Assembly (NCBI RefSeq): GCF_964204645.1
Contig: NC_134033.1
Coordinates: forward strand, 3,992,231 to 4,056,230
DNA from: Tubulanus polymorphus
Taxonomy: Eukaryota > Animalia > Nemertea
DNA length: 64,000 nt
Reading direction: 5' to 3'
Below the pieces are notes generated by a model. The model saw nothing but the letters and a program-made list of their open reading frames with translations. It was not told the origin of the DNA and did no database searches. The first letter of the stretch is position 1. Each line of letters begins with the position of its first letter. Below, piece by piece: positions 17,201 through 48,058 of this stretch. Both the position numbers and the translations under genes were made by a program.

Positions 17201-17414
17201 ACCAACGACATTCGACACCGCGCACTAACGACGGATAGTTCGGTGAAACGATGTAACCAGACGTAGAATCGACGGAGTATTGAGTGTTGTTACAAGATGA
17301 ACTGACTGTAACAGACGCGGCTTCCTCGACAGAGTTTGCGCGATCAGCCCGCGTAAATATACAGTCTCCGCAAGCGATCAGTAAAACTACGAACAACGCT
17401 TTCATTCGCTGCAT
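11235..17414 (-). CDS. GRL101/RXFP-like GPCR with CUB, C-type lectin, LDLa and LRR ectodomain, copy 2 (~1931 aa)
   Basis: Exons 17414-16188, 15886-14573 and 14489-11235, all in frame. Signal peptide MKALFVVLLIACGDC; CUB motif SGYIVSPNYP; CTL motifs LNWENAEIYC and WTGGKPLSYTEW; LDLa CDGRSDCPNSEDE; LRR LxxLDLxxN; hinge AYKFCC; TM7 FLPINSSLNPLLYT. Confidence 0.92.
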
Positions 17415-18589
17415 ATTGAACACAATTCACGCTTCAAAACTAACACATTTCTAACTCTTTCCAAGTTTGCGCGATATTTCTCATAAGAGTCGCTGCAAAG
17501 TAATGACGAGTTGTCAAGTTGTCAGAAGTTGACGAATGGATCGAGTCCAATTATTTTGTAAAAAGATCTCCCATCAAACTGGCGCCAGTCTCGTATTTCT
17601 GTTACTTTCACCTGCGCTCGGTTTCGCAGTAATTACCGTGGTTTCTAAATTTAGACGTGTTTCAATATATCGTGTTTATAATCATGTGCAATTATTTCTC
17701 TAAAAATATTTACTTTCTCTCCCGAACTGCGTTCAGTTTGTGATAATATTCTATGACATTTTCTATCTTTACCTCAAAATATTCTGCGTCTCTGTAAAAC
17801 ACTTCGTCAATATCTGTTTTGACTAAATTCGCTCTACAGTCAATATAATAACTGAGTTGAAGCTAAGTGAAGCGCGTGGATATCTGATTGTGGTGAGTAA
17901 GGTCTTGTTTGGAACAGATTGTTTTGAAGAAACAATAGCAACCAAGTAAGACGGGGATCACAGCGGTAGATCCGGAATCTACACCTCGGAATACATCTTC
18001 CTACCAAGTTTAGAAGGAATCAGAGAAAAATTTTTTTTCGCCGAAAAAAAACTCCTGGACTTACACCTTAGATGTTTGCCGTTTTTAGCCAAAAAATCGA
18101 ATCCGTTCGATTTGCTTAAAATTTAAGTCCTAAATATTTTCGGGGGTGCTGATTCCAAATCTGCAATCAGATTTCAAATATCTCAAAAACCCTGGGGTCC
18201 AGGGCCTTTTTAAAATTTAAGGGGTACCCGTAAGAATTCGAATTTCTCATTTTTGAGGCCTCGGATCCTAAGAATTCTTTCAGATTTGTGATCAGCACCC
18301 CAGAATACATGTCTATACTAAATTTCTCCGAAATTGGAGACAAAAAATATTTGACCCCTAACCCTCGTTTTGGGGGGTACCTTAGATTGCCATTTCTATG
18401 ATACACCAGTAACTAGACTTAACTCTAACATAACTCAAATTTATTAAGTTTCATGTATATTTTTAGGATGTTTGTCATCAATATGGCGGAACTATTGACG
18501 GTTGTTATGGTGGTGACGATTCCCCCTTTACCTACAATCAGTAGAGAATTGATTTGAACATTATACAGACATTGATGCAGTGGAGCAGA

Positions 18590-21540: not shown

Positions 21541-21698
21541 TCCGGACTAGTGAACTTACCGGACTACTAGTGAACTAACCAGACTGTATGTGAACTTACC
21601 GGACTACATGTGAACTATATGTGCTCTAACCGGACTACTAGTGAACTAACTGGACTACATGTGAACTTACCAAACTACATGTGAACTAACTGGACTAA
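21541..21698. repeat. ~20-bp minisatellite (ggactactagtgaactaacc)
   Basis: Visible tandem units. Confidence 0.75.
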
Positions 21699-22029
21699 AA
21701 GTCGATTGATACTCGTAAAAAATAATCAGTGGTTGACTCCTGAAGGTGTGGAATTCTGTATGTGGAATTGTGGAACTCCGTGGACTATTATTACTGCTAG
21801 ACAAGGGAGGAGAGACTTGTGTGAGTAGAATTTCTTTTATGTTTCAAAAACAATTATGAGAGAGCAGTTTATCTGTAAACATAGTGTTTACTGAGTGTCA
21901 TAAGAATTGTCAATGGAGTTATTTACAGCAGCCTGTAATTGTGTGGCAGGAATTATAATTCAGGGTTTTAGTGAGAGTATCAATTTCTGCCTTAAAAATT
22001 AATTGAATACTTGGCTCAATAGATAAAAT

Positions 22030-22823
22030 TGTATTTTTGGACCAAATTTCATCAAAATTTGTGACGAAAATAAGGGTCAAAACACAAAATCCTGAATATC
22101 TCATTTTAGAGGCCTCAGATCCAAAAACTAACTTCATATTCGTGATCAGCACACCAAAAAACATTTCTGTACCAAATTTTATTAAAATTGGGCCAAAAAA
22201 ATATTTTGATTTTGTACCCCATTTTTGGGGTGCATATTTTGGGCATTAAAACCCTTATTTGCCAATGAAGATGAATTCCGATTCAAAATCTGATTGCATA
22301 TCCGGAATCTACACCACAGAATACATTTTCCTACCAAGTTTACAAGGAATCAAAGAAAAAAAATTTTTCGCCGAAAAAAAACTCCTGGACCTTAGATTTT
22401 TGCCGTTTTTGGCCAAAAAATCGAATCTCTTCGATTTGCTTAAAATTTTAGTCCTTACTATTTTCAGGGGCGCTGATTTCAAATCTGCAATCAGATTTTG
22501 AATATCTGGGGTCCAAGGCCTTTTGACAATTTGGGGGTCCCCCCAAAAATTAGAATTTCTCATTTTTGGGGCCTCGGATCCGAAAAATTCTTTCAGATTT
22601 GTAATCAGCACCCCAGAATACATGTATATACTGAATTTCATCGAAATCGGTGACAAAAAATATTTGGCCCCTGACCCTCATTTTGGGGGTACCTTAGATT
22701 GCCATTTCTCTGATACACCGGTAACTAGACTTAACTCTAACTCTGTATGTTTGATTGATGGCCTTAAATCTATTAAGTTTCATGTATATTTTTAGGATGT
22801 TTGTCATCAATATGGTGGAACTA
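22030..22823. repeat. Dispersed repeat with internal duplication (likely non-autonomous transposon); partial copies at 17970-18495 and 60460-60980
   Basis: Repeated motif gcctcggatcc..ttcagatttgtgatcagcacccc (22091-22240 vs 22551-22700); 22300-22823 matches 17970-18495. Confidence 0.6.
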
Positions 22824-23054
22824 TGATCAGGACTACATCAGATGGTGTGGGCAGTGTTCAAACTCAGCGACAGGATAAACAAACAAACGAACTCATATTG
22901 GGAGAACTTGACTTCAGTTATAGTGAACTTTATGTCCACGAGGACAAAATAATAACATTACTGCTGATGGGATAAATATCTGTTTGAACTAGAAACTGTT
23001 AACGGTATTCTAGATAGAAAACAAGAGGAACATAAGTTCAGGTGATATGCCATC

Positions 23055-23412
23055 CTATCCTCTCTATCTCTTTCTATCCTCTCTCATTCTCACTCTCTCC
23101 TCACTCTGTTTCACTCTCATCTCTCCTCACTCTGTCTCACTCTCACTCTCTCCTCACTCTGTTTCACTCTCATCTCTCCTCACTCTGTCTCATTCTCACT
23201 CTCTCCTCACTCTGTTTCACTCTCATCTCTCTCCTCACTCTGTCCCTTTCTCACTCTCTCCTCACTCTGTTTCACTCTCATCTCTCCTCACTCTGTCTCA
23301 TTCTCACTCTCTCCTCACTCTGTTTCACTCTCATCTCTCCTCACTCTCTCTCTCTCTCTCATCTCTCCTCCTTTCTCTTACTCTGTCTCTGCCCACTCTT
23401 GTCTCATTCTCT
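23055..23412. repeat. CT-rich low-complexity minisatellite (ctctcctcactctgtttcactctcat)
   Basis: Visible tandem units. Confidence 0.9.
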
Positions 23413-23535
23413 ATTACCATCTACCGGGTTGAAATGGGAACTAGTTCCTGTCTCGCCCGGTAGATGGCATTATTTTTTTGATAAAATTTGCTTAAGCAAT
23501 GGATAAATATGAGTTCCTCTGTGTGCTGCCAGCAC

Positions 23536-23605
23536 GTCCCTATAGCGTAGTGGGTAGGGTGCTGGACTGCTAGTCGAATGGTTGGTGGTTCAAATCCCAT
23601 TTTAG
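23536..23605 (+). mobile_element. tRNA-derived SINE head / tRNA pseudogene
   Basis: A box TAGCGTAGTGG and B box GGTTCAAATCC; anticodon-like arm gacTGCTAgtc; acceptor stem does not pair. Confidence 0.55.
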
Positions 23606-23925
23606 TTGATATTAAATATTGATGTTTCAATAAAATGTTGAATTTTACTTTTGCAAACAAGCTGTAAGAAATTCCTACTTTGAATTTGGAATAAATTCTT
23701 TGATTTGTACTTTGCGTTTGTCCTTTCCTATTTGACTTTGTCCTTTCCTTGATTGTGTGAGAAGCGGAAGAGTTCTTTCCGGAGCAGTGTCGAGTATGAA
23801 GTTGTGAGGGGAAGAGTCATTTCCGGAGCCCGAGACAGAGATTTTTAGTAAGACGAGCATTTTATGTATATGGACGTTTACTTATTTACGTTACTTTATA
23901 ACATGCGGCAAAACGAAATAATGAC

Positions 23926-24352
23926 GGAGTAGAGTCTGCGTCTCGAGGTTTGGAGATGGTGCTTTAGTCGGAGTAGAGTCTGCGTCTCGAGGTTTGGAGA
24001 TGTTTGGAGATGGTGCTTTAGTCGGAGTAGAGTCTGCGTCTCGAGGTTTGGAGATGGTGCTTTAGTCGGAGTAGAGTCTGCGTCTCGAGGTTTGGAGATG
24101 GTGCTTTAGTCGGAGTAGAGTCTGCGTCTCGAGGTTTGGAGATGGTGCCTTAGTCGGAGTAGAGTCTGCGTCTCGAGGTTTGGAGATGGTGCCTTAGTCG
24201 GAGTAGAGTCTGCGTCTCGAGGTTTGGAGATGATGCTTTAGTCGGAGTAGAGTCTGCGTCTCAAGGTTTGGAGATGGAGTGGAGTCTGCATCTCGAGGTT
24301 TGGAGATGGTGCTTTAGTCGGAGTTGAGTCTGCGTCTCGAGATTTGAAGATG
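23926..24352. repeat. 44-bp tandem repeat, ~9-10 copies
   Basis: Unit ggagtagagtctgcgtctcgaggtttggagatggtgctttagtc, head-to-tail with no spacers. Confidence 0.92.
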
Positions 24353-25719
24353 TTGCTGTAACTCAAATATAGCCGGCTGAAAAACGGAAACGAAAATCGG
24401 ATAATCGTCAAGCTATTGAAGAAGATTGAATATGCAAAATGTAAGGACGGGTGTAGTTTAATATAATTACCTTATCTTAATGTAAAGATACCGAAACAGC
24501 AAAATGTGGGTTGATGCGGTTCCCAATGCAGCAGCAGCAGCAGCAGACTAGTTAGGACGTTGCGACAAACGAGTTGTGTACATGTAGTTGTCAGTAGTAG
24601 CGAACTGGTTTCGGTTTAACCCTAAAAAGACACAATATTCATAATGTATGAATGTGCGCGAAATAGAACATCGGAAATCAGCGACAACAGCAACTCGTCT
24701 TCATCAGCAAATTAGCCGTAATCTGTTTGTAGTTGAAATCAGACATCAACAGCAGCAGCAGCAGTATCGGGATCTCCACCGCAATCATCAGCATCAACAG
24801 CCGCCAGTCTCATCTTGCGTTCTCAATCGCTAGGCGTCACAAATTCCTTCACGTTCCAGTCTCTCCTAACATCATCAGCCGCTTATCAGTAGGTTGTTTG
24901 CTTAAAGCCACACGTTCTTCACGCCTTGTTGCAGAGCTCTTATAGGTCGACCTTCATCACTGGACATCGGTTCTCGGACTGGCACCGGGCGGCTCGAAAC
25001 GCGCTTCTAATACCTACGTCAACCAATCAACGACGGTGCATCATCGATGCGACCGGAATGGGTCAATCAGAAAGCTCGATCGCGCATTCCTGTGACAGAC
25101 CCGAGTCCGTGACGCTAATCCGAAAGAACTATTCAATTCGTGCCAAACATTTTCAATGGGGCCTATACAGGTCATCGAGTTTAATTCGACTATTCATAGA
25201 GGCACATATTGTTTAAGATAGAAATATCGAATGCTACGATTTTTGCCTAAAATTGTAAGCTGAAATTTTATCTAAACTATCCAACAAACTTTAGTGTAGA
25301 TTTCCCTTCTATTTACGTCTGGTTTTGAACTATAATACCGGCTCAATTTTACTATTTTCGAGTTTTGCTTTAGGATATCGAAGTTTGCTTAAGGGTTTGT
25401 GCAGTGACGCGGCACTATTGTGTAGTAGAGCGTATGGCAGGTCTCCAGTGAGTGATTCTCTATTGGATAGAGTCGTTTTGAATCCGAATTTATACACAAG
25501 TTCACCAGACATCGCCGCGTACACATCTTCTTTAACCGAAATCTGGTGAAGTTAAAAAAATTATCAAAGTTTTATCATCAGTTGAGAAAGAACTGTGATT
25601 GATCACCGCGTGCGCTGCTTGTACCGAATAGTCGCTTGGATTTCTTCAGTTCGAGGAATTGAATAAATATAAAAAAATTTCCCAAACCCTCACCACTAAA
25701 CTTAAAATAACAAACTAAT

Positions 25720-26010
25720 ATTGTAAAAAAGTCGAAGGTCCCTGGGGGAATTACTCCGCAGCCTGGACCGGTATTGTGGGATAAATAAATAATTCAGCCA
25801 GAAACGACTGAATTAAACATAATTTACCCCACACCAGTTATTTTGTAGGACTCACGCATTAGCAACCTCATTCCAGGGAGGACAGTACTCTCGACTCGCC
25901 CGCTTACCGGAGATCATTTGCCACATCCTGACCCGCCTCCTCCGAGACTCGAACCCGGGCCACAGCGGTGACACGCTAGTCGCCGACCGACTAAGCCATC
26001 CGGTCCGCCC
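25720..26010 (-). mobile_element. tRNA-derived SINE
   Basis: Minus-strand head gggcggaccggaTGGCTTAGTCGG...GGTTCGAGTCT (Pol III A and B boxes), followed by ~200 bp of body and a T/A-rich tail. Confidence 0.55.
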
Positions 26011-26881
26011 GATTGTGATTGGAAAACATTCTAACATGTAACTACGTGTAACCATGTTACATGTAAATGTTACCATCGATTTCAAATTTGATTCATGCAA
26101 CTGATTTCATGATGCTGTATTTTGTCGAGATACATTTGGTTGACGAAAAGTGGCTTAATTACATCAGCAAACTGCAGAATTTCTTTTCTATTGCGTCTGG
26201 CAAATCCGGTAAAATCCACTAGAAATTTTGAATTATTTCTGTTTAGGAAATTAAGGTTAGGTTAGGTTTAAGCTTAGTCGAAGAAATGACGGACCCTCGT
26301 TATAGCAAACTGAAATACAGTGGACTCAATCTTAACTCGAATCGATTGTGATCTCAGTGATTTGTGTTTGAATTCCAATTAAACAACGGAAATCTGATTG
26401 CCAGCATCGAATGTAAGTATTCCAATATTTGTTTTCGGAGTTTCAATGCTTATTCGACTTGAAGAGATTCGAGTTACGAGTAATCTAACGATTTATCAGA
26501 TATAAACAATCGAAAACATTTGCTTCATTGCATATTGGGTCATACAATCCATATCGTATATGTTGTAACCCGCTTTAATCGTCTGACACTAAAACCGTTC
26601 TAGATTCTGTATTTAGACGCGAGACAAATATGAAAATATTGAGAAATAACTAAAATTGTGGATTTGTCACCTGACGCTCAATAACACAAAACTTTTGCAG
26701 GGATTTACTGAAACTGAAGTGTCCGTTCAAACTTTTAAATTGGCTTTAAGTGCAAAATATAAAACCAATTCTAAACACATTTGACCTGGTCCAGAGTTGA
26801 TACGGGCAATTCGGCAGTATAGGAAGGTGGGCTAGACTATAACGGGCACCGAGGAGTCGAGTAAAGGTTTGTGAAAGGTTG

Positions 26882-26917
<36 letters not shown>

Positions 26918-26927
26918 AATGAAGTGT

Positions 26928-29309
26928 GGGTTTGACTATTTCACGGAATGGCTTCTTATTGTAATAATGTTACAAATGTGTAAATCACCGGTTCCGGAGA
27001 TTGTGGTTCTAAACAATGCAACAGATGTCGCCTTCGCTAATTTACACTTGTCGTAGAGTTTTCTCAGGAGACTCAGGAGGTTAGCTCGGTGGGCACAGGA
27101 CGGCGCTCCGGCCCACAGACTGATGGAGGTTAGAAACTGACTTTCACCGAGATGGTTATTGCGCTTTGCGTCCTGTCAGACGTCAACTTCACTCACAAAT
27201 CCTCAAGCTCGTGCCACTAATTTCCCTATTAACTGAATTACTGTAGAGATTGATTTAAAAGTTGAAATAATCTGCCTTAATAACTGGTATCTGGCTGATG
27301 AATGGAGATGTCATCAAGTTTAGCGAGCAGAGCCTCATCAGAAATGATTTTGTCCCAGAAACCGTTTTTACATTCGAATAAACTTTGTACAATTTTGAAT
27401 AAAAGTCATGTAGGAATCAAGGTTTCAAGGTTTCAAATTTGTCATTTTATTTAAATCTGCAACAAGTGTGAATTACGAGTCTCCTTTATTTTAATAATTC
27501 TTGCTCAGTCACACGTATAAAACCAATAAACCAAATACAATACATCGAAATAGTAAAGCTGATCTTTGAGTGAATACCTGGCTTAGTTGAATAAAAAGTT
27601 TTATAATCAGTTTATTATCTTCGGTTATGAATATATCCGAAAAATGACATATGTTGCGTTTTCTAAGAACCACCCGGTAGAGTTTGGATGCTGTAACGAC
27701 GCTTTGCTCATCCGCTGGTGCTGTATAAGGACTTCTCTCCGCTGCTGGTTCAAGGTTCCGATAATGATACATTTGACAATGTCGCGTTCCTCTAGGTAAG
27801 TGAAGTGTTTAGCGATTTGAAATAGTCAAAACCAAGATAGAAACTTTCGAAATAATGCATTTATCTATAACCATTTCGAATTCTCTTGAACTTCGAGTGT
27901 TTGGTGTGTTGACGAAACCCGTTATTTCGGTATTTCTATGAAAAGTTCTTAAACCCGACCTAAATTGCAGAAATCGAATCCTTTATTTCAAACACTTTAT
28001 TTTCATTGAACACACACGCAATGAATTTCAGTATTTACACCTCGCATATCTTCAGGTATTCCACCTCCTCACAGCGTTATTCACTTATACTACGACACCC
28101 TACAAAACAAATAGCATCAACATTTTAAAAATATGCAGGGCATATTTATGAAAAGGTGGTTGTGGTTGTTAGGCTTTAGACACGTCAGTGATACCTTTTC
28201 AACGTGTATTTCTAACTCAAATTCGTTTTAACAGTGTCTTAATCTCTAAACCAAACCCTAAGCAGAACGCCGTCCCCAAATGTGTGGAACTGCATCACGA
28301 AACGGCCTAGATAGTGGAAGGCGATGGAGGGAGACGTGTTCGCGCCGGTGGAGGGAGACTCCGACTATTTCGTGTTCACTCAAGGAACAACTCGAAAAAA
28401 CTTCGTATCAATTGCATCAGGTCATTTTCAGCTTCACTTCAATGTATTTTACTGTTTTTATACGTGTGACTGAGCAAGAACAATAAGAGAATAAGTAATT
28501 TACACTTGTCGCAGATTCAACCAAAATTACGAACTTAAAACAGAACATAATAACATGATATGATTTATTTGTCACTTAAAGATAACAATGAAATAAAGAA
28601 TGCCGAGTTAACATCAATAAGTGAGGGTGCAGTCACAGAGCTCGCAGGCTGTAACAACTTAGGACCAAGCCAAGTGGTTTCCACAATGGTTTACCACGGT
28701 AATTTTATTCAAAATCTGCCATCATTTTTTCTAAGAATACTCTCACTAGCTTTATTTACTTGCAGAAGCCGATTCGTCGCTGGAGACCAGAAAGGGCCAT
28801 CACAAAATAGCTATGTCTTCATTCATTCGGCTCGGAGAAAGTAAAGTCAACATCGCTTAAGTCCTCTTTAGTTGGGAGAATCGTTAAGATGATGACTTAC
28901 CGAAAGAACGTATTACAAATTACTCCAGAGAATTGGAAATACAAATACTGATGTAGTGTGATGACTTATCTGATAATGACTTAAGCGAGGTTGAGTGTGT
29001 AGTGGCAAGGTGTTAGGTATGGTAAACGAGGGGATCATCTGTTGGTCGGAAATTGAAATAACCATTTTAGTAAAAAAGTCTATTTCTGTCATGAATTCGC
29101 CGGTGGGCCGGAGCGCCGTCCTGTGCCCAACGAGCTAACCTCCTCGGTCTCCTGAGAAAACTATACGACAAGTGTAAATTAAGCGAAGGCGACATCTGTT
29201 GCATTTTTCAGAACCACTCTTCGTAGTAACCGCGATCCCCAGACCCGGAAACTTACATATTTATACGCATTATTACAATACGAAGCCATTCCGTGAAATA
29301 GTCAAACCC
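26928..29309. mobile_element. Non-autonomous DNA transposon with ~190-bp terminal inverted repeats
   Basis: 26928-27116 (gggtttgactatttcacggaatggctt...gcacaggacggcgctccggcccac) is the reverse complement of 29103-29309; no transposase ORF inside; adjacent to (TA)n at 26886-26913. Confidence 0.7.
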
Positions 29310-31049
29310 GAAATTCATATGACTATTAAATCTACTCGTTATAACCGGATTAATCGTCCTTGACTGATCAGAGATTCCATTCTTAACTCCAGGCAAGCAG
29401 ACGATCAAAACTAATTTGAATCAATGATTTAGAACAAAATTGCGATATATGTTTGATAAATGCGACCACCTTCCCAAGCCTATAGCTCGACTACTCTCAG
29501 GTGCTGTATAAATGTCTCGGACGATTGAACCGGTTACAAGTCGGTTTTACAAGTAATATTTCATTATCCAGTTTTATGGAATAAATTTCAAGATTGCTTT
29601 ATCTGATAAATTGTTTCACATAGGACTCCTCTTAACTCAAATTTGTCAAAACCGGCAAGTGGAATTATCATTTCAAACTTTAATACACATAATTTAGAAC
29701 CATTACAACAAAAGAATATCAAGAATATCAATCAGGTTTTTCTAACACCTCAAACATTAATCACTGGTCAGAAATTAATTCGAGTTAAGAGGAATTTTAG
29801 GAGTCTAATGTATCTGAAATTGCTGTAACGAGGACCAATCTGTTTGATAGATAGGCTTAAACTCGACCTAACCTAAGTTTCCTATACGAAAAACTATTAG
29901 AAATTCTACTCACCAATTCATGGATTACTTCGATCAGTTATCTGTTTGTTTCTTAGAAGATATGACATCCAAGCAGGCTACAACATTCTACTGGTCTGTT
30001 GGTCCAGGTTGGTAAAGTCCAGCACGCAGACAGCAATCGGGTCTGGAGTAATCGAGGAATGTCTGAATTCCAATTATGCATTTGTTGATTTAGTCCGCAG
30101 CAGGTATTGACAGCAAACAGGTCCCGAGTAAGCGAGGAAGGCCTGAAGTCCACTGTGTATTAGTTGATTAAGTCCAGCACGCATTGACAGAGGAAGTAGA
30201 GCTCCTCTGAAAAAAACGTAATGATCACCGTTATGTTTTTTAATTTGACTCCATACAATCCGTTATATCCAGTATTAAAAAACCTACAAATCTACTCACC
30301 ACCAATTCAATTCTGGAGAATCATAGATTATTTTGAAAACAGCGTTGTTTTAGTCAGCCCCGCGGTATTGGAAGCAATGAGGTCCTCAATGAGGAATGGC
30401 TGATCTGAAAAAGAAAACAATTTCATATTTTACAGTTTCAATTCTGACTGATGAATCAATATTCAAGTAAAGAAGCCCGAGCCCTTATAGCTTATAGATT
30501 TACAAAATCCCGTTTAAGATTCAACTCACCTAACCTCACGTAAGGACTGGACATATATGTGCGTGTATAGTGAATTCAACGTGCGTCAAGAATTAATCCT
30601 CAAAACTGGTTCAATTCAAATCGAACACGTATTACATGATTTCAAAGACCGAGGACAATAACATGACACAATATGAGCTGAGTTTGTCATAATGGGACAC
30701 GAGCACCACTGGCTACAAAATACCACTGAACTACAAACGCGTGGTTCTATGATAATACGTACCACACCCTCTGTACTATTCTAACAAACTCAAAAATATT
30801 CATTTCAAATACAATGAATAAGAAGTTGACCAGTGGGTATCAATAATTCATTAGCTGGAGGATACATCGGTCAAATATAAGAAGTGGACCAGTCCTCATT
30901 AGAATGCACAAGAAATATCTTAGAACAGTTCGCACTACATTCAAATAATCAATTTCCATTGTTTATGACTCGAATTGTCGCTGAATTCGAAGAAAATTCT
31001 TAGAACTATTAGCGATAGACTGTAAACTAATGCCTCGATCAAAAATCAT

Positions 31050-31265
31050 TCCCAGGCCTAGCTCATTCTCAGACCTAGCTTATTCTTAGACCTAGCTCAT
31101 TCCCACCACACCTAGCTCATTATCAGACCTAGCTCATTCCCGCCAGACCTAGCTCATTCCCAGACCTAGCTCATTCCCAGACCTAGCTCATTCTCAGACC
31201 TAGCTCATTCCCAGACCTAGCTCATTCCCAGACCTAGCTCATTCTCAGACCTAGCTCATCCCGCC
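31050..31265. repeat. ~17-21-bp minisatellite (agacctagctcattccc)
   Basis: Visible tandem units. Confidence 0.9.
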
Positions 31266-31850
31266 AGCCCACGAATTGTTATCGCGGGATAAAACGAAAA
31301 ACTACCGTTTTATCGCGAAAATGAACCCAAAACATTTCGGTTTTTACTGACAGCCATCATCAGGAATCTGTTAGAAATAAAGAGATGTCGCGCACGTAAT
31401 GTCGCGCTAGAGAGTCGCCATATACGTAAACAAAAACAAAAGATAACCACAGTATTTACGAACGTTCTTAGTTAAGTTCAACTCCCAGAGTTAAGATCAG
31501 TATTTCGATACATGGATTGTCAATGTTCGAACTCAGTATGCTCGCGTTCCCAGCGGTACATGCCCTGTGGCGGTTCTCGATGAAAGTTCTGTTCTGGTTG
31601 GTGTAATAGGCCAAAAACACCGGGGTGCCTTTTGCTAAAAAGTTGATTACAGTTAACCAATGGATGGTCAGGCGTCCCGAGGAATTTTCATAGGGGTTCA
31701 AATTAGCATCAATCCAGCATTCGAGCACAATGTCTGGTTTTTGGTGGACATGCCCCTCAGTAACTGGCCCCGGAATGTTCTCTCTCCTCTCCGATGACGA
31801 ACTAATGAGAAATACACGTCTTGTCTTTCGTGAATTAGTATTTATTGATA

Positions 31851-33319
31851 TCAGGCAGTATCGGGAGTCGTTTGAATGCAAACTGCTGGCTGCTGAACAC
31901 CGAAATCTTGGTAATCCAAATCTACAAAAAAAATCAATTGAAAATTAACATACCGGTACGTGAACTGAACAGAGCAAGGCGCATCTTTGAAAGCTGGGCG
32001 TAGGTCGACCTTGCGATGCGACGCGATCGTCGCGTTGCGTCACAAGTGGCTGCACAAGTCGGTTGCGACGCGATTGTCAGCGACTGTGTGCGACTAGTTG
32101 CTCTCCAGTCGCAAGAGCGCGTAGATCGGTTGCGATGGTCGCGTCGCGTCGCAGAAAGTAGAACATGTGCGACTCATTGCGACTGGCGTTGCTGGCAGTC
32201 GCAACCCGTCGACGGCAGTCGCAAGGTAGCGTAGGTCGGTTGGTCGTTGCGACGCGATCGTCGCTGGCGGTCGCAGTAAGTCGCGTCGTCGCAGTGAGTC
32301 GCAAGCCGTCGCAAGGCCGACCTACGCCCGGCTTTAGATAGCTGGGCGTAGGTCGGTCGTATTTGGCGGCGTAGTAATTAAGAATGGTATTTCCATCGAA
32401 ATTGTGTTAAATCGGGTGGTAGATTTCTGACGGATCCCTGTAAGATCCGCCTACACTCACTCCAGCCGGTAGTACGGCCGATGACGTCGTAGTTGAAGAT
32501 GGACTTGACCTTGACCTCGATGACGCCGTCTGCGGGTGCGTCCTTCATGATGAAGAACGCGCCGTATTTAGCGCGTTCGGTCGTTCGCCACGCCTCTTCT
32601 CCCGGCCATCGGTAATTCACTTCGTAAATGGCATTTCTAAAGATAAAAAGAAAACTGACATGAAAGTTTATTGACGACTTGAAGAATAACCCACATAATG
32701 CTCGATATTGTCGACAACGAATGATATTCTATGAATGATATATTATCAAGGATCAAGAAAGTTATTTCTAATTTGAATATATCGACAATATTGAACGCCA
32801 ACCAGTCCAGCCCCAATATCAATGACGTAGTACACACATCCACTCCCACAATATCCCGATTACCATTAAAATTCGCTATCATAAGGGTCATCTTAGTTCT
32901 ATAACCAATACAATAACTTAAGGCTAGTCTCAAGATTTAGGAACACTTGTACTGAAGGTACGATGCGCAACTGATCCCGGAACGCCCCAAAATTTTTGTT
33001 GTAAAAATCTTCTTTCTTTGAATATGCTTCTACGTAAAAAAATAAAACACACAGTTATATGAAGAAAAGTCTATTTTCTAACTGCTTCGGGGTTACTCCT
33101 AAAACTCCATCATCAAAGAAACTAAAAAGAAAAAATGCTTCTACGTGCATCCCTCGGAAGAACTATTTCCATACCTGTAATTGTGAAATGTTAATTGCGT
33201 CCAGAATTTGTTTTTTTCGGTGAATCGGTACTGTATGTTACCGCGCACCGGACACGGCACCATTTTCCACGAATTCGGGATCCAGCCCGACGGAAGCTGC
33301 ATCGCGATATCGAAACCAC
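31851..33319 (-). CDS. Expansin-like (EXLX/YoaJ-type; end of DPBB domain + CBM63) protein, last three exons; 5' exons missing
   Basis: Exons 33319-33175, 32636-32461 and 31921-31851 have compatible phases (AG|gtatgg..tttag|A; A|gtgagt..ttgtag|AT). AATAAA follows the stop (31846-31841). Spliced peptide: GFDIAMQLPSGWIPNSWKMVPCPVRGNIQYRFTEKNKFWTQLTFHNYRNAIYEVNYRWPGEEAWRTTERAKYGAFFIMKDAPADGVIEVKVKSIFNYDVIGRTTGWNLDYQDFGVQQPAVCIQTTPDTA*. Confidence 0.75.
31991..32335. mobile_element. Palindromic MITE (PIF/Harbinger-like) in the last intron of the expansin-like gene
   Basis: TIRs aagctgggcgtaggtcgaccttgcga / tcgcaaggccgacctacgcccggctt; interior rich in gtcgc/gcgac; a third TIR fragment at 32340. 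Confidence 0.7.
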
Positions 33320-33912
33320 CTTCAACAAAAACGAAATAAACATCATCGATCTATAAAACCAGGGTAGTCTCATTACACTGATAAAACCAACGAGGGATTT
33401 CTGGTTAATTTAATGGGCCCAAGAGACCGGTTCCGTAGTCAGGACTTCAGACCAAAAGTGGTCATAACCCTTTGGTGCCCACCCGTTTTTCCCTCAAAAG
33501 GTCTTTTGTGCCCAAGGTATATGGCCGATGCAATTAAACAACGAGCTAGGATACTACTAAAATCATCATAACTTTTTGAATTATGAAGATAGACAGATAA
33601 TCTTTACACCAAATGAAAGGTAACTTTCACAGCTATCAGATAATGCAGAATAACATATTCCATATATATGATTACCCCAAAAATAATGACAAATCACACC
33701 TCATAAAAATTTTTAAACTTCATGAAGAAAATACAATATTTTTTTGGCAAAAGTATATCTAAATGTCAAATAAAGAAACAAATCACACAAAATGGTATAT
33801 TTCCTAAGTTATATCCAAAAATCAAGCCATTTCCTCAATAAAGAAAAGGGTTAAACCTTAACACTGGTCTTAAATTATTAGATTGGCTATAGAATTAAGT
33901 TTGTCTTGGAAC

Positions 33913-36900
33913 TGTTGTGGAGTTGCTTTCGGTTCTCCAACAATGTTGCGGGGTTGAATTTCTCAACCAATTGTTGTGGGGGCCACGTTGCGTTCTCCCC
34001 TCGTGTTGTCGTTGTTGGTTCCGATTAATCCGATAAGTGATATCCCTCTGACTCCGGAATAATAACAACTCTTCTCGTGGGTCTACGTTCTTTCTTTATT
34101 TTCCCGCACAATTCTTATTCCTTCCTACAGCTCGTATTTTTAGGCTTCTCCGCCACTCTCGCATCTCTCTTCCCCTTACTGTGCTGACCCTCCCTTTTTA
34201 TCTTATTTCATGTTACTCGTGACGTATACTTCTACATATGTTATACGTCACGAGTTTATTATACTTGTTTACTTCCTAGCCATACCAGAGCTCAAGGCTG
34301 CCGCTATAACCAGCAACCCTACGCAGATACTCACGTCACTTTCACCTATCTTCTATTCAGTGTCTTGTGTGCGACGTAAGCATCTACGTAGTTTGTTTAC
34401 TAACTTCAGCCACTGCCCTGAACTCTGGCTTCCCTCCCTCTATGCAAACTACTAATTTATCACCCCAATACTATCCTCCTCCCCAGACGATTGGTCCCCA
34501 ATCGCCAAAAATTCACAAGACCCTATTGTAGTTTCCCAAAAAAAAAAATCTTTTCAAAAGTGCACAGGCTTCAGAACATCATTTATAAGCAACATCTCTT
34601 ACAACTTAAAGCCAGCCGCAGGGTAATGAAAATTACACAAAACCTTCAGAACATCAAGACTAATGATACACAACCACCATTCCGTACATCAATTTACAAC
34701 ACCTGTAAAGTAGCCATAAATCACAATTTCTGACCCTTTCCCCTATTATCCCATCCCGCATAACTTCTACCTAAACTAAGCAACACACCCCACTCATCAT
34801 CAGTTCATCTGATTCATCAACGAGACCTACATGGACCCCATAGAATTTTACGGTAAGCAAAAAATATTTCTAAATACTTATAAACTTAACACACGAACTT
34901 TATCTAAGGGAAAGTAATCATCTACAAATATCAAATATGAGACTCTTTTCATCAGTAATATGTAACAATTATGAGGCATGTACATCTGTATATTGATCTT
35001 ACATTTAATGAGAACAAGCCTATACAATTGTAGTCATGCAAAAAAAACATATCAAACACAACTTCCCAAATAGCTTTCATAGACAATCACCCATTTCTCT
35101 ATATCCACATTTATGTAGTCTCATAATTTAACAATATATGACCAACCACTTCAACTTTCTGACTCTTCTCGTTCTCGTTATCTTTACCAAAAAAAATAAT
35201 CAGTGTGTGCAGCCTTATTTGTCTTTAAAATTACCATTGCAAACACGTCAATTTCCCACTGTCCAAACTATCAGCCGTTACCTTAACCGATATCAGATGA
35301 TTTGTCAAACCTGTCCCGACCCCAATCAACGACGTAAATTAATACAGATGCCAGATACATCATTTAGTTGATTATTATGTGCCCAGCACACGTTGGCAAC
35401 ATACATGCTCAACAATGAATTCACAAACAATTTCATAATAATTTTTCTATGTGTACGTAACATAAAGGTAAGCCAAAACATACCAAAAATGAATATACCG
35501 CATGCGTACATTCGCATTATTGAGATATCAGCTGCTAGTCCCCACCCATTTCCTCAGAAAGCACATTTATCCGTAGTCTAGGCAGGGATAACATGAACTG
35601 CTATTTGCGGCTTGGAACCGTTGAAATAGACAGGCAGGCCGCCATATATTTATGGAAGGATGTCATAAAGTGACCACAAAACTCATTAAGATGCATCACC
35701 CAAAAGTTAGGGAAAATTCCTCTGGACACTACTCATTCAGTGCCATTCAAACAGCCGATTCTCAAAAATTAACTTTAACTCCTGGGCCTATGGTCTTCCA
35801 AACCACCCACATCTGATATTCGAATTGTTCTAATTCCTTCCCGCAAATCAGGGGATATAACCCCACATGTAAAACGGCCGACGCATCATCCTGTATATAA
35901 ACCGGTCAAGACGGAAAGTTCGGAAAAAAAAACATAGCGCTCACACATCCCTGCAATCTACGACCATTCAGTTAAGATACCCAATCTACCGAATAATACT
36001 TATCATACTTATTGTATTACGCAATGAGCAACCCTTTACTTCTAAAAAACCAATCCCCTGAATGGCCATTTCAGCATACCTAACAAATAGCTGTATCGTG
36101 ACATTTCTCATTTCCGTATCATCCCCCATGTCACGCCTTACCGGAGTAAAATAAAATCAATGGATAAATAGGGAACCGGCCGACGAATCACCCATTTGGT
36201 ATTTCTTGATATTCGACCCTAATTATGCCCAACATATATATCCAATCTCTCCCAGAGGCCAGCCACTAAACATTATACTGTTTCAAAGGATCTTCAGAAT
36301 CCTTCGGGCTATAATCCCCCGTTTTATTCCGGACCATCCCTAGAGCATCCCTTACTCTTCATCCAGGTCCCTGGTCCACCTTAATTCATTTCATATAAAC
36401 AACTCTATTCAAACCCCCTCCGGTAAGATTCACCACTGAGCGCCCAATCTAACCTTTGCACAATAAACATATTCTATACTAACTCGCGATACTCATTATA
36501 TTTCTTAAAACCACATAAACACCACAGTTATTTGTTAGGTATATACAGGCAGTGAGCGCTTTCAACTATCGTTACACTGTTAACCGAGTGGCTCACCTAG
36601 ACTAATAAATCATTCTTTCGCGAAATACCATCCAGCAAATTTAGCAAACTATAAAAGATTTACGTAGTGCATATTTATATCTACGTAGATACAATAACCC
36701 AGCACACAAGCAACTTAAAAACGCTGAGTATCATTCTACAAAAGCAATCAAAACATGCAGCAATACATATCATATTATTTACAATTACTATAAGCCGCAA
36801 TCGTAGTCCGTTGAACGTCTCCAAGGTCGATTTCCCGTAGCAGATCTATGAACTGTCCGATGATGAAATGCGTTTGTATAATGCCTCTAATACCCCACTG

Positions 36901-37958
36901 TATTTCATTTATCGCGTTACGATCGCAGAATCGCTTCGTTTCCGAACGCCATTATGTCCGTTAATTCACACGAATCTAAATTCGGAGTAGTGAATCCAAT
37001 TTTCTGCCATGTAAAACGTAGTGTCCAAAACACGATCTTACGAAAACGCCACACCAAATCGGATAATTCAATTAATTTAAATATGGAAAGAAACAACTTC
37101 TTTCCGCACTGGAAGCTCTATAATTCATTTCAACTGAATCTGACGATATGAAGATTATATATTTCTCGAATAAGACAAACAAACAGCTATTAAATCCAGA
37201 CGGGAATGGTTTTTATACACAGATCGAGTTATCCGCAATATTTCAACTTAACCCGCGGTAGCGGCCCGTATTTCATGTAATTATAACGGTTACGGAATGT
37301 AACGTTCATCTTACACTTTTACTTCACCCCTGTTCACTCACCAAATATACACGATCGCTTGGCAGCGAGAGGTGCAGGATACACCACTGTTCTCCACCAA
37401 TGTTGTGGAGTTGCCTTCGGTTCTCCAACAATGTTGTGGGGTTGAATTTCTCAACCAATTGTTGTGGGGGCCACGTTGCGTTCTCCCCTTGTGTTGTCGT
37501 TGTTGGTTCCGATTAATCCGATAAGTGATATCCCTCTGACTCCGGAATAATAACAACTCTTCTCGTGGGTCTACGTTCTTTCTTTATTTTCCCGCACAAT
37601 TCTTATTCCTTCCTACAGCTCGTATTTTTAGGCTTCTCCGCCACTCTCGCATCTCTCTCCCCCTTACTGTGCTGACCCTCTCTTTTAATCTTATTTCATG
37701 TTACTCGTGACGTATACTTCTACATATGTTATACGTCACGAGTTTATTATACTTGTTTACTTCCTAGCCATACCAGAGCTCAAGGCTGCCGCTATAACCA
37801 GCAACCCTACGCAGATACTCACGTCACTTTCACCTATCTTCTATTCAGTGTCTTGTGTGCGACGTAAGCATCTACGTAGTTTGTTTACTAACTTCAGCCA
37901 CTGCCCTGAACTCTGGCTTCCCTCCCTCTATGCAAACTACTAATTTATCACCCCAATA
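33913..37958 (-). mobile_element. Non-autonomous LTR retroelement (~4.0 kb)
   Basis: 558-bp direct repeats at 33913-34470 and 37401-37958, with about 6 mismatches. Minus-strand termini TATTG...CAACA. PBS-like TGGTGGAGAA at 37399-37390 (complementary to a tRNA-Ala-type 3' end). Polypurine tract GGGGAGGAGGATAG at 34484-34471 abuts the 3' LTR. No internal gag/pol ORF; no TSD. Confidence 0.82.
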
Positions 37959-38850
37959 GTATTCCATCAATTGTAGTGAGCAGTCCTGATTTATTATATA
38001 CTTGAATTAACGGGTTAGAGATGTTCCAATCTGATATTTTGTAAACTTGCCAGAGTAGCTTCGACTTCAAACTACTTTCAATTTCAATACGTGCTTTGTT
38101 AGTTTTAGTATAAAACGATGAAGGCGGATGTCCGGTTTGTTCTCGTATAAGAGCTATAGGTTCACTGGTGCTGTTCCATCCGTCGGAAATTTGAGGACGA
38201 GTTTTCATCGGATCCACGCCTGGTCTTAATCTGAAATCTATCTGTATAAACGTTAAATTCATTGCAAACCCGTCTGGCATCCCGATCCATTCTAACAACA
38301 ATTTACATCGGAGGGTAGAAATCATGAATTCATAACCTGTTTGAGTTGGTAATTCTTTTACTGCATGCTTGTGACATGTATATACAATTTTCAAGCGACT
38401 CTGTTCTTCAAACCGATATATGATGTTAACCCGACTACCTCGCGCTCCATCGACGTTACTCCTAAACAACAACGAAATCAAACCGTTACTGCGGATATCA
38501 AGTTGTTTTCTTCCGTTAGCGCAGAGTTTGTTGCCGGACTCACCGACTAGAAGGTAGTTTTCGTTACAGAATATCGACGGCTCGATGTCGTAGTAAACTT
38601 GAACGAGAAAACTTCCCGGTAAAGAGCTGTTGACGAACCAACGACATTCAACACCGCGCACTAACGACGGATAGTTCGGTGAAACGATGTAACCAGACGT
38701 AGAATCGACGGAGTATTGAGTGTTGTTACAAGACGAACTGACTGTAACAGACGCGGCTTCCTCGACAGAGTTTGCGCGATCAGCCCGCGTAAATATACAG
38801 TCTCCGCAAGCGATCAGTAAAACTACGAACAACGCTTTCATTCGCTGCAT
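37959..38850 (-). pseudogene. GPCR copy 3: 5' part of exon 1 only (signal peptide + CUB), truncated by an LTR
   Basis: Near-identical to exon 1 of the other copies up to ...LLTTIDGI, then runs into the LTR at 37958. The rest of the gene is absent on the other side of the element. Confidence 0.88.
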
Positions 38851-41807
38851 ATTGAACACAATTCACGCTTCAAAACAAACACATTTCTAACTATTTCTAA
38901 GTTTGCGCGACATTTCTCATAAGAGTGGCTGCAAAGTAATGACGAATTCGCAAATGTTTAAAGTTGACGAATTAATTGAGTCCAATTATTTTGTATAAAA
39001 ACTCTCCCATCAAACTGGCGCCAGTCTCGTATTTGTAAAACTTTCATCTGTTCTCGGTTTCGCTGTAATTACCGCGGTTTCTAAATTTAGACGTGCTTCA
39101 ATATATCGTGTCTATAATCGTGTGCGATTATTTCGCTAAAAATATTTACTGTCGCTCCCGAACTGCGTTTTGATAACCGAACCAGTTTTTGATAATGTTC
39201 GATGATATTTTCTATATTAACTTCAGAATATTCTGCGTCTCTGTAAAAGACTTCGTCAATATCTGTTTTGACAATTCACACTCTACAGTCAATATAATAA
39301 CTGAGTTGTAGCTAGATGAAGAGTATGGATATCTGATTGTGGCGGGTAAGGTCTTGTTCTGTGCAGACTTTTTGAGGAAACAACTCAATCCAAGTAAGAC
39401 GACGATGACAGCGGTAGAATAGAAACCGTGCTTATAACGAACCAACAAATACAGCAAATACCGATAACGTATTTCGGCGTTATAATCGGACTTCTAGAAA
39501 ACGGGTTGACGATATTTGAATATCTCTGACGCGTTAGAATTAAGAGAAAACTTAACAGTGGTAGAATAGAAACTGTGCTTATAACGAACCAACAAATACA
39601 GCAAATACCGATAACGTATTTCGGAGTTATAATTGGACTTGTAGAAAACGGGTTGACGATATTTGAATATCTCTAACGCGTTAGAATTAAGAGAAAAGTT
39701 AAAGTAGCCTATATTTATTCATCTTGACTTGAATTCATAAATACAAATAACAGTATTTCCTGCTTGGCTGCTGCTGTTGCTGCTGTTGCTGGTGCTAAGA
39801 CAGTTCTAGCAAGTTACAGAGAATGGGTATTTGATTTATTGAATGGATTGCATATTTCCTATGATGATATCATCTTAATTCATTTTATTTGATGAAATCA
39901 ATTGCAAATAGTTCTAAGATTCGTGCTTGATTTCAGTGACAATTCGAGTTATAGACAATGGAAATGTAATTAACAGATTGTATTGCAAAGTGATTTTTCT
40001 GCTAATTCAATTTTGAAAGGATTTAATTTACTGTATAGAAATATCATTTTAACGAGGACTGTTAGAGAATATCTGATATTAAATCTACTTCATATATTAG
40101 TTAGGTTTCTGAAGTTAAGATACTAACAGGGCCAGTCTGGTATTATCTAGCCAGTGGTGGTCGTGTCCATTGAACCTCATTATGACAAACTCCGTTCATA
40201 TTGTGGCCTGTTCTTGTCCTCGATCTTTGAAATCATGTAATACGTGTTCGATTTGAATTGAACCAATTCTGATGATTCATTCGTAACATACGTTGAATTC
40301 ACTATACACGCGCATATATGTCCAGTCCTTATGTGAGGTTACGTAAGTGAAAAGGGAGATCTATAAGTTTTTTTCCACTAATTTAGAGACTAATTTGCGA
40401 AGTTGCCGAGGAATGCTTTCGACAATTCACATCTCGTGTAAAATTAGTCTACTTGACTCCCTATCTCTGGGATCTCACTCGGGCATCCAACCTAAACTTA
40501 AACATTGATTCTTCCAGTCGGAACTGAAATATGAAATTGTTGTTTTTCAGATTAGCCATTCCTCACTCAGGACCTGATTGCTGCCAATACCAGACTCCAG
40601 GCTTTTCTAAAAAATCCATGATGCTTCACACATAAATTGGTGGTGAGTAGATTTGTGGGTTTTTGATAATGGATATAACAGATTACAATGTGCATGTATC
40701 GAGTCAAATTTAAAATTATTATTGAGATCAATACTGTTTTTCAGATATGCTCTACTTCCTCGGGACCTGATTGCTGTCAGTGCGTGCTGGACTTAACCAA
40801 CAAGACGGGACATATTTTAGTGCTGTAACTTGGGTGTCAAATCTCCCAATGAAACGATAACTGATCGTTATAATCCATGAAGTTCCACTCATGAATTGGT
40901 GAGAAGACATTTTAATTCCAATTCTAAATGTCAAACTTAAGTTAGGTCGGATTCAAGCTGATTCAAGTCAAATTAAACACCTTAGTTGCTTTTTCAGAGA
41001 AGATCTTCCTGAGCAGGATCTGATTGTTGAATAAACCGACAAATACACTTTCCAGATTCCAGAACTTCCTCACTTCATCAGGACCTGATTGCACCAAGTG
41101 TGTGCCGACAAAAACAACCTGATCTGATAGAGGACTCATGTGAGCTGAATGATAAATCTCTTCGAGGAAAAGATAATCGAAAACTGCTCACATAAATCGG
41201 TGAGTAGAAATTATAAATTATTTCTCTCTAGGAAACTGAGGTTAGGTTTAATCTTAGGGTATTTCGTGTTCACTCACGCGTGACGAGGGTTGATATACAA
41301 ACTACCATCGTCACTAATTGAATCATCCAAGAGAACTTCAAATATTTGTTTTTTTAAATGATGCCCTTTCGCCATTTTCTCGGGACATGTTTGCTACCGT
41401 TTCGATTAAACCAACCCAAATCGCGACCGGAAGACTCAAACTCTTCCGGAATAAACTAAGGAGCTCAACACGTCACATGGATCATGGCGAGTAGACATTT
41501 TGTGGAGTCGAAATATCTAATCACCATGATTTAATTTCAATACACTGCAGAGCTGTATGATATTGTATAAAAACTTATGTTTCAAAAAATGAGCGAAAAT
41601 TTATCGCAACAATGAGGACCTCGACGGACCGCCACGAAATGACAACTAGAAACTGGAAACTTCTTTATTGTGAATGACACAATAAAAAAATTAAACTAAT
41701 TCGGTCATGCGATTTCAAACGAACTCAACTAAGTTTTAGGATTTCGAGTTTCAACCCCAATTTATAGATAGGCAAACATTATACAGGGACTCTTGTCAAA
41801 CTGTTGT

Positions 41808-44800
41808 TTATTTACTGGATGTCGTCAATCCTAGTCGTCGTTTATTGCGTTCACGAATAGATTTCATATCGATAGTAAGTATTGTATAAAGAAGCGGATT
41901 CAGAGACGAGTTGATCGGTAAAAATAGAACGGCCAGCCAAGCGGCCATCTGGTTCGGTATCTCGACCGAAAATACGGCGCAAAACTGAACGATTATTATC
42001 GGTAGCCAGCAAAATAAATTACAAAGATTGATTACTAAACTCCTTCGAGCTAAAACCAGTTCGGTAGGATCGGCTCTACCCGAGCCCGACCTACTTCCAG
42101 ATACGAGTCTATACATCTGAGCGTACGTCGTCATTATCGTAGCCAATATGGCCGCATTAAACAAGGCAAAAATAGCGAATGAATAGTGCCAGCCATCGAC
42201 GTCGATCGTCAGTAAATTCATAGGCAAACAAACTCCGGTTGTACCGTAAAAATTGTCTCCGAAGTAAGACGACGATGACAGCGGTAGAATAGAAACTGTG
42301 CTTATAACGAGCCAACAAAAGCAGCAAATACCGATAACGTATTTCGGAGTTATAATCGGACTTCTAGAAAATGGGTTGACGATATTTGAATATCTCTGAC
42401 GCGTTAGAATTAAGAGAAAAGTCAAGGAACCTTCGCACGAAACGGTGACAATAACCCCGGCGAGACGACATAATGAGCTATCCGTCCAGGTTTCAGAATT
42501 CAGATAATAAACGCCTTTGAACACGTGGTCAGCTCCTGCGATCAGAAACAAATAGACCGACATCAGAATATCACAACCGGCAATATTTATGATGAGGATA
42601 TCTGAAGATGTGTTACGTGTTCCTGAGGATTCCATCCGCAAAGCTTGAACGCGAAATACAATAACGATACTGTTAGCGAAAAAACTGAAAGATGCGATCA
42701 TCCAGATGATGGCTCTCAGTACAGCGTTACCCATCAGGTCAGAGCAGGTCGAAAATTGATCAGCTTCGGGAAGACATCGGTCAACATTCGGTGCCATGCA
42801 GCAAAATTTGAAAGCATCCGAAGCGAGGTATTTCAATGACGTAAGATCGCCAAGGACGTTTCTTTGTACGGATATTATTTCAAAATTGTTGACAAGGTCT
42901 AGAATTTCAAGTCGAGCCAATCCAGAAAATGCATAGCTAGAAATATAATGGATTCTGTTACTGCTGATATTTAACGACTGTAATGCGGATAAACCTTTAA
43001 ATACATTTTCACCGAGAACCGATATAGAAAGTCCGTGAAGATCGAGAACAGTAAGTGACGTCAGACCTCGAAAACTACCGTCTTCTAAATGTTGGAGTGG
43101 ATTTCCGATAAGAAATAGTTCTTTTAAAACGACCAAACCTACGAATGTATTAGCAGATAATGATGTAATGCGGTTGTGTGTAAGGTCTAATGCGTATAGA
43201 TTATTTAGATTAGAAAACGCGTTTGGAACGATGTAAGACAAATTATTGCACGAAATATCGAGAAAACGAAGATAAATGAAAGAGTTGAACGTCGACTCGT
43301 TAAATACGACTCGGTTATTCGACAGAATCAAAACCCGAGTTGATTCTATAAAACGACCAGTAATATCTGATAAAAGGAGATTTTCACAATCGATGAAATG
43401 ACCCCGGCAATTACAACGTTCAGGACACGTGACCTTACAGTATGACTCGTCATCTGAGTTATGTTTACAATTTACGACTCCGTCGCAAACTTCAGATTGC
43501 GGAATACATCGGTTTTCCTGGCCACATTTAAACATTCCCGGACACGACCAAGTCTCGCAGTTTCGTTCATCTTCAGAATTAGGACAATCGGATCGACCGT
43601 CACAAACGTGTCTGATCGGTATACAGTAAGATGCCGGACATTTTACAGTACCAGCCGCGCATTCGAAGTCATTACACGCGAGTATATGTTCAAGATTTCT
43701 ACATACCGGGAAACCAATCGGCATCCTTTCTAAAATACACCTTTCGTGTCGGGAATAACAGCGAGGAGAATTGAACGAACATCTTTGTTCATCCGATTCC
43801 TTACACAGATCTGTGAAACGAGTCGAACATTGATTGTCATTATTACAGTAAACCTCGGGATTCACTGTCATATTAGTGACCAATTCGTCTTCTTCGAGAC
43901 TTCCGCTACAATCCACGGCACCATCCCGATACATCTGAGAACTAATACATTCACCGTCCGCGCACGAGAACCCCTGACAAAGTTCGCCAGTGCATCCGAT
44001 TTCATCGGAGCCGTCTTTACAGTTGGCTAGTCCGTCACATCGTTTATAACTATCGATGCATTGGTGATTGGAACAGCGATATCGCGTAGATAAACACGGT
44101 GGATGATAGCACGAGTTCTCATCCGAGCCATCGACGCAATCTCTCATAAAGTCACAGAAACCGCTTATCGATATAACCTGTCCATCGTTACAGCGGAACT
44201 GACTGTGTAAATTGATATCCGTACAATCGAGTTCATCTTCACCGTGTTGACAGTCGTGTCTGGTATCACATACGCGATGGTCGCTGATACATCTTTGATC
44301 GTTACATTCAAACTGCCACGATTTACAACCGCTTATAGAAGCTGACTCTTCACCAGTTACATTATAGGTACATAACACGGAATGCGCTTTATCTTTTGTA
44401 TTATCGAAAGGTTTCAATAACCATTTAAGCGATTGAATATAAGTAATTTCATTTTTGGTCACCAGTGGTTTGATAACTTTAAATGCGTCGCGGTCCATTG
44501 TCAGTATAGCGCCATATTGATGGCGATATTGAAATTTGTTGATCAAATTTTTCATATCACTTTCTATATTTAAGTTGATTCTTACTATTTCGGCGCGGAT
44601 GCTGTGACACATTTCTCTGGCACTCCGAATATTCAAACCTCGATTGTTTTTCCAGTCGGTTAATATTTGATAACATTGTCCAGAATTAGTTACCCAACCT
44701 CTTGGACAGGTTGAATTAATTAAAGTAACATCGGGATTCATTTGATCTATGGTTTTATTTAGTTCTGTATTTGTTGAATTGTTCGCATCGTTTATCGTTG

Positions 44801-47800: not shown

Positions 47801-48058
47801 GTAAACTTGAACGAGAAAACTTCCCGGTAAAGAGCTGTTGACGAACCAACGACATTCAACACCGCGCACTAACGACGGATAGTTCGGTGAAACGATGTAA
47901 CCAGACGTAGAATCGACGGAGTATTGAGTGTTGTTACAAGATGAACTGACTGTAACAGACGCGGCTTCCTCGACAGAGTTTGCGCGATCAGCCCGCGTAA
48001 ATATACAGTCTCCGCAAGCGATCAGTAAAACTACGAACAACGCTTTCATTCGCTGCAT
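41808..48058 (-). CDS. GRL101/RXFP-like CUB-CTL-LDLa-LRR GPCR, copy 4 (~1950 aa)
   Basis: Exons 48058-46829, 46512-45160 and 45077-41808; canonical phase-0 GT-AG introns of 316 and 82 nt; same domains as copy 2; alternative C-tail RERNKRRLGLTTSSK. Confidence 0.92.

Follow-up and report, generated by a model that had tools for sequence, protein, structure and literature searches.

A partial expansin-like gene copy in the nemertean Tubulanus polymorphus, its two-module parent gene, and the origin of animal expansins

Introduction

Among the closest known relatives of the gene considered here are the microbial expansins of the EXLX type, represented by Bacillus subtilis EXLX1/YoaJ (PDB 2BH0) and by the profile NF041144. 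In BsEXLX1, residues W125, W126, and Y157 bind glucan, loosening requires Asp82, and a D82N protein is inactive (PMC5072189). Several animal genes have been likened to these proteins. The Exaiptasia gene Aipgene19685, described as 'Expansin-YoaJ' plus a chitin-binding domain, is upregulated in the pedal disc (PMC6626399), and a yoaJ gene of Spongilla mesocytes has been discussed as a transfer into the freshwater lineage (PMC10176882). According to a survey of expansins, annotations in tunicates and bivalves are possibly contaminant, and plant-parasitic nematodes have expansin-like effectors in which the domain order is reversed; the survey did not settle whether the small number of expansins annotated in animals represent real genes or contamination (10.1101/637728).

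The nemertean gene shares with microbial EXLX the order DPBB followed by CBM63, the WxxVxCP linker, the N-x-K-[YV]-P start of domain 2, the aromatic triad, and (in its second module) Asp82. It differs in its low identity (~20-30%, below the NF041144 cut-off), in its Cys-rich domain 1, in a loop between Asp82 and the linker Trp that is 7-8 residues shorter, and in having introns and two tandem modules on a Pro/Thr stalk; the window copy is the 3' part only. With anthozoan genes in which an expansin is joined to CBM14 (L037-L039) it has in common two internal introns, the boundary of the first exon of module 1 (in L037), the short loop, a CGMC motif, and an Asn in place of Asp82, which in the nemertean is found in module 1. 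The anthozoan proteins, however, consist of one module plus a chitin-binding domain, and their domain 2 is nearer the bacterial type than is that of the nemertean. The anthozoan layout matches that of Exaiptasia Aipgene19685, a likeness drawn from the published description. The sponge, tunicate, and bivalve genes, also likened by description, are expansin-like genes of aquatic animals, as is the nemertean gene. The nematode effectors are likewise secreted animal proteins with an expansin-like domain, but the nemertean order is the canonical one.

The window locus

The window analyzed is a stretch of 64,000 nucleotides of Tubulanus polymorphus DNA (NCBI RefSeq assembly GCF_964204645.1, contig NC_134033.1, positions 3,992,231 to 4,056,230 of the forward strand). 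Three minus-strand exons within it (Table 1) have AG/GT ends and compatible phases of 1, 2, and 1, and when spliced they encode the C-terminal 60% of one EXLX-type expansin module. These exons are the last three of the single T. polymorphus expansin-like gene, hereafter the parent, and an LTR element connects them to a broken GPCR exon. The original prediction had proposed three in-phase exons ending in a stop and an AATAAA, a likeness to EXLX1/YoaJ, and the presence of an FDIA motif, an F-W pair, and a Tyr, and each of these features is borne out. All searches and trees were run exon by exon, with the full-length relative P0003 used as a stand-in for the complete module. The protein encoded by exon A, which is 100% identical to that of the corresponding parent exon, matches just three PDB entries at E<=10, and all three are expansins (Xanthomonas EXLX1 at E 0.0011; YoaJ at E 0.023). 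Exon B has no PDB match; it matches the corresponding exon of parent module 1 and P0003 (Z=11 versus P0003), whose own matches to NF041144 have E values of 7e-6 and 4e-14, respectively.

Table 1. Features of the window locus, in window coordinates
Feature	Position	Strand	Remarks
Exon A (parent exon 8)	33175..33319	-	145 nt; end of DPBB with the Asp82 equivalent (FDIA), WxxVxCP linker, start of CBM63-like domain with F-W
Exon B (parent exon 9)	32461..32636	-	176 nt; body of CBM63-like domain, Tyr157 equivalent
Exon C (parent exon 10)	31851..31921	-	71 nt; final 22 whole codons and TGA
AATAAA polyadenylation signal	31841..31846	-	intact in the parent and all 8 copies
Parent intron 7 remnant	33320..33912	-	contains 378-bp insertion at 33473-33850
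Segmental duplication comprising the parent 3' end with 12 kb or more of downstream flank	21545..33472	-	matches C9:2,776,427-2,789,000 at 90-98% identity; inverted relative to parent
Non-autonomous LTR retroelement	33913..37962	-	562-bp direct repeats at 37401-37962 and 33913-34474; PBS-like and polypurine-like stretches; no long ORF
GRL101-type GPCR first exon (signal peptide and CUB-like)	37948..38859	-	cut by the LTR; stop a few codons into the LTR

Profile searches divided the material. None of the three short window exons matches Pfam or NCBIfam, and the expansin exons of parent and window, searched singly, give no match to Pfam DPBB_1 or Expansin_C. The profile support that had been looked for thus failed at the window exons themselves and was obtained from the parent exons and P0003, which do match NF041144. 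Exons 1-7 are absent from the window copy, which has no start exon, no signal peptide, and no DPBB core; in their place, upstream of exon A, lie the LTR element and then the GPCR exon. The original statement that 5' exons are missing is upheld by the finding that the exon encoding the N-terminus of module 2 (parent exon 7) occurs once only in the genome, at the parent.

The parent gene

A search of the genome for a full-length paralog, as had been suggested, located a ten-exon gene on contig C9 (C9:2,772,348-2,778,033), 1.25 Mb away. All of its introns are GT-AG, and the exons join to 1869 nt in frame (622 codons). Behind a hydrophobic leader or signal peptide come module 1, encoded by exons 2-5, a stalk of Pro/Thr repeats (~190 aa; exon 6), and module 2 (exons 7-10), so that by exon order the succession of DPBB and CBM63 is present twice. 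The parent exons match consecutive stretches of NF041144 (positions 25-65, 86-123, and 126-177, with E values of 0.14, 0.027, and 7e-6). The equivalent of Asp82 is Asp in module 2 and in the window copy and Asn in module 1; the equivalents of W125/W126/Y157 are W/W/Y in module 1 and F/W/Y in module 2, and the Asp71 equivalent is kept in module 2. Scanning the genome gave nine near-identical loci that carry both exon A and exon B, and a single further exon with 50% identity.

The neighbor of the parent is the gene for mitochondrial EF-Ts, whose product is identical to XP_074658122.1 of Tubulanus polymorphus. This gene (L021:498-1469, minus strand) is intronless and GC-rich (GC3 0.68) and stands head to head with the parent expansin at a distance of ~1.9 kb. 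At the donor of parent intron 7 (L021:7119), one contig of run X1 has a 21-bp deletion that keeps the GT in a weaker context and is possibly an allele.

Comparisons using a full-length relative

P0003, a one-module database protein (SRR28369062), matches NF041144 over profile positions 13-176 (E 4e-14) and YoaJ (E 2.5e-7). It should be noted that its score is 52 bits against a cut-off of 100 bits for NF041144, that single exons are too short to reach this cut-off, and that P0003 has no match in Pfam. The first 12 structures returned for a structure model of P0003 (pLDDT 66) were all expansins or group-1 allergens; this fold match is not independent evidence, since 11 bacterial expansins were in the alignment used for the model, and a fold from the single sequence (pLDDT 42) was unusable. 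When an FN3 domain, an alternative that the original prediction had allowed for, was tested on the P0003 model, it was rejected as the better match (best E 2.7e-3 versus 7e-11 for expansin), and the expansin assignment was kept.

Homolog searches with P0003 and its alignment, which were limited in length and therefore blind to a 622-aa protein, returned just P0003 and P0002. The top match of a representative search, P0001, is a multihaem cytochrome and was discarded as spurious. In the ESM Atlas, both expansin queries gave scores of 0.89-0.91 with a cluster of 53 proteins of 279 aa, every one of them viral and Nucleocytoviricota being the commonest source; three scans of viral contigs for expansin relatives found nothing.

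Formation of the window copy

The duplicated stretch begins inside parent intron 7, and 8 recent partial copies of the parent, the window locus among them, are ~93-97% identical over 2 kb. One of these lies on C22, a 139-kb contig that looks like an unplaced piece or an alternative haplotype of the C9 array, so that there may be 7 copies instead of 8. In this copy (L028) the Asp82 codon has changed to Asn. Another copy (L066; C9:4,067,000-4,070,000) has an insertion of ~1.4 kb in its last intron. The insertion within the intron 7 remnant of the window copy has ends of the TTAA-CCC...GGG type and, going by its sequence, resembles a piggyBac-like MITE.

The LTR element at the breakpoint belongs to a young family with at least 40 copies genome-wide, which are 97-100% identical and lie on many contigs. 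Target-site duplications of 4 bp flank three of four other copies, whereas the window element has none, and it separates different genes, with intron 7 of the expansin adjoining one end and the truncated first exon of a GRL101-type GPCR the other. The simplest reading of this breakpoint is ectopic recombination involving two copies of the element, which would probably have joined the expansin 3' exons to the broken GPCR exon. The joined unit then multiplied to 8 copies together with an unstable GPCR array. The GPCR piece is kept in 6 of the 8 expansin copies, the other two having other flanks. GPCR first-exon matches number at least 132 genome-wide, with ~60 on C9. Within the window, tandem genes for giant GRL101-type GPCRs, with CUB, C-type lectin, LDLa, LRR, and 7TM domains, occupy 964-7229, 11235-17423, 41808-48067, and 53684-59913 on the minus strand, in units of ~10 kb.

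In three public runs from two samples, which are evidently DNA because they cover introns, contigs of the 3' part of the parent are several-fold deeper than those of the 5' part (~170 versus 22 in X1). This excess is consistent with real amplification, though it is not a copy count. Splice junctions appear in none of the three runs.

Coding potential of the window copy

Lacking the start-codon exon, the signal peptide, and most of the DPBB, the window copy probably makes no working expansin. The state of the 8 copies counts against a non-functional reading, as it is more orderly than would be expected of dead fragments. All of them keep the frame, splice sites, stop, and AATAAA, with no stop or frameshift; in their exons pN/pS is 0.37 (10 synonymous and 12 replacement changes; P=0.02), and indel sites number 0 in exons versus 23 in non-coding DNA (P about 0.01). 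Polymorphic sites make up 5.6% of exon positions versus 7.5% of non-coding positions (P=0.23). However, the copies differ from the parent by just 1-5% per segment and share variants mosaically, and youth together with gene conversion from the parent can therefore explain the apparent constraint.

It is improbable that the 3' copies are expressed instead, from a transcript that begins in the 3' LTR or from one that begins at the GPCR promoter and uses a cryptic donor at 38543. The predicted products would be a protein of 124 aa with CBM63 only, or a CUB-CBM63 chimera that is secreted. The intact frames and signals in 8 of 8 copies, the pN/pS value, and the indel-free exons would fit expression, as would the donor itself, which has the consensus GTGAGT and is in phase (phase 1) with exon A. 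Yet this donor is also found in three of the four intact GPCR copies checked, inside an open exon; the CUB fragment that precedes it evolves without constraint, gathering replacements (1 synonymous change against 6 replacements, of which two affect a Trp), and is absent altogether from 2 of the 8 copies. AATAAA signals within the LTR, and the Asp82 to Asn change in one copy, also speak against it. The reading of the window copy as a truncated duplicate without a working product is accordingly preferred.

An anthozoan gene with the same introns

The representative search had one other genuine match, on long ENA contigs (L037-L039) whose host is placed by an adjoining GPCR with named best matches that are all anthozoan. 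On these contigs a predicted spliced expansin is followed by a CBM14 exon. Two of its expansin exons match NF041144 (E 1e-8 and 1.5e-10). Within the predicted exon model, two introns coincide in position and phase with those of both Tubulanus modules: one, of phase 1, interrupts the Gly that lies three residues ahead of Asp82, and the other, of phase 2, interrupts the Lys/Arg codon of N-x-K. The chance of two such internal matches is between 3e-5 (600 sites) and 3e-3 (60 favored sites). In addition, the first anthozoan DPBB exon begins 12 residues ahead of the first Cys, like that of Tubulanus module 1. In L037 (9959-17132) the CBM14 exon runs into a long low-complexity exon and there is a further CBM14 near 20,000, so that this is possibly one large matrix protein.

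The length of the loop between Asp82 and the linker Trp also sets these genes apart. It is 13-14 residues in Tubulanus, in the anthozoan gene, and in L052, versus 21-23 residues in 12 bacterial EXLX; P0003 is ambiguous in this respect. L052, from a metagenome collection, is a CBM1-fused and apparently eukaryotic (probably protist) expansin and is the closest non-animal sequence found.

Origin of the animal expansin

In trees of the individual exons, which were thinly sampled and without fungal, amoebozoan, or plant sequences, Tubulanus groups with P0003 (95-99), and in two of the three the anthozoan gene groups with L052. The tree of the N-terminal exon sets animal rows and L052 apart from bacteria (92/87). 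An animal clade is not established (N-terminal exon, 83/88; remaining exons, p-AU 0.145 and 0.06); these trees neither support nor reject animal monophyly.

The original prediction took the gene to be a domesticated, horizontally acquired one. If this means that a bacterial EXLX gene was acquired recently, or by nemerteans specifically, and gained introns later, it is very improbable. Such a transfer would accord with the scores of exon A, which are best against myxobacterial EXLX (Z 10-19) and higher than against the anthozoan exon, with PDB matches that are mostly bacterial, with the great rarity of close relatives in databases, and with the integration of the gene in a host chromosome. But the introns, exact in position and phase, are common to an anthozoan gene and hence not lineage-specific, the short loop is found in none of the bacteria tested, and the animal N-terminal motif has no relative among 185,579 prokaryotic genomes. 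The comparison with bacterial EXLX that was proposed as a check did not bear out the transfer either, as Tubulanus is nested inside bacteria in none of the three trees and the N-terminal exon separates as described above. Contamination or an assembly artifact deserves hardly any credence: although animal expansin annotations have been suspected as contaminant (10.1101/637728), this gene lies on a 16.5-Mb contig beside the host EF-Ts gene and has nine spliceosomal introns, and separate DNA runs hold contigs that pass through its exons and introns, with a deeper 3' part, which refutes an artifact except as to the exact copy number.

The shared intron positions make animal expansins look old and often lost rather than recently imported from bacteria. 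The sponge, anemone, tunicate, and bivalve genes described in the literature accord with such a wider occurrence. We consider it probable that the animal gene was inherited from an intron-bearing eukaryotic gene that was already present in the cnidarian-bilaterian ancestor and has been lost in many lineages. Rather unlikely, by comparison, is an ancient transfer in which an early animal or holozoan received the gene from a microbe, either bacterial or a cellulose-walled protist, followed by vertical descent and many losses. It is compatible with the shared introns and with the patchy distribution among animals, and the closest non-animal sequence being L052 is in its favor; nothing in the present comparison, which is without choanoflagellate, fungal, and amoebozoan sequences, separates it from inheritance from an opisthokont ancestor. 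Descent from the ancestral intron-bearing gene is the reading followed below. A tentative extension of it, which we regard as somewhat doubtful, is an ancestral animal subfamily with a short loop, a Cys-rich domain, and conserved introns, present in anthozoans, nemerteans, and perhaps sponges, whose task shifted from cellulose to chitin or to further extracellular glycans of animals, with the nemertean tandem pairing a loosening module and an anchor module.

Proposed function of the parent protein

By analogy with BsEXLX1, the parent is likely a secreted 622-aa glycan binder that attaches at two points, with a head that would loosen and another that would anchor, both carried on a flexible stalk. 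Both of its CBM63 domains should bind flat beta-1,4 glycan, and module 2 could loosen fibers without cutting them. Module 1 is probably the anchor, since its Asn at position 82 is the change that inactivates BsEXLX1. Tubulanus is predatory and inhabits a tube that it secretes; this, and the fusion of the anthozoan relative to a chitin-binding domain, make chitin or the animal's own matrix a likelier target than plant cellulose. The likeliest substrate may thus be an extracellular glycan of the animal itself or prey chitin rather than a plant wall, a suggestion to which we would give slightly less than an even chance.

Significance

Taken together, the analyses are explained with fair confidence by a truncated duplicate in the window, a secreted two-module glycan-binding parent, and an ancestral animal gene. 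The window locus itself is a commonplace duplicated fragment that arose as a by-product of the instability of a GPCR array, and it matters less than the family to which it leads, for which the result is moderately surprising. A chromosomal, ten-exon nemertean gene that has intron positions in common with an anthozoan gene shows that at least these animal expansins are real, and the shared introns point to an origin before the cnidarian-bilaterian split. The parent also offers a testable case of an expansin that would act on a substrate other than the plant wall.
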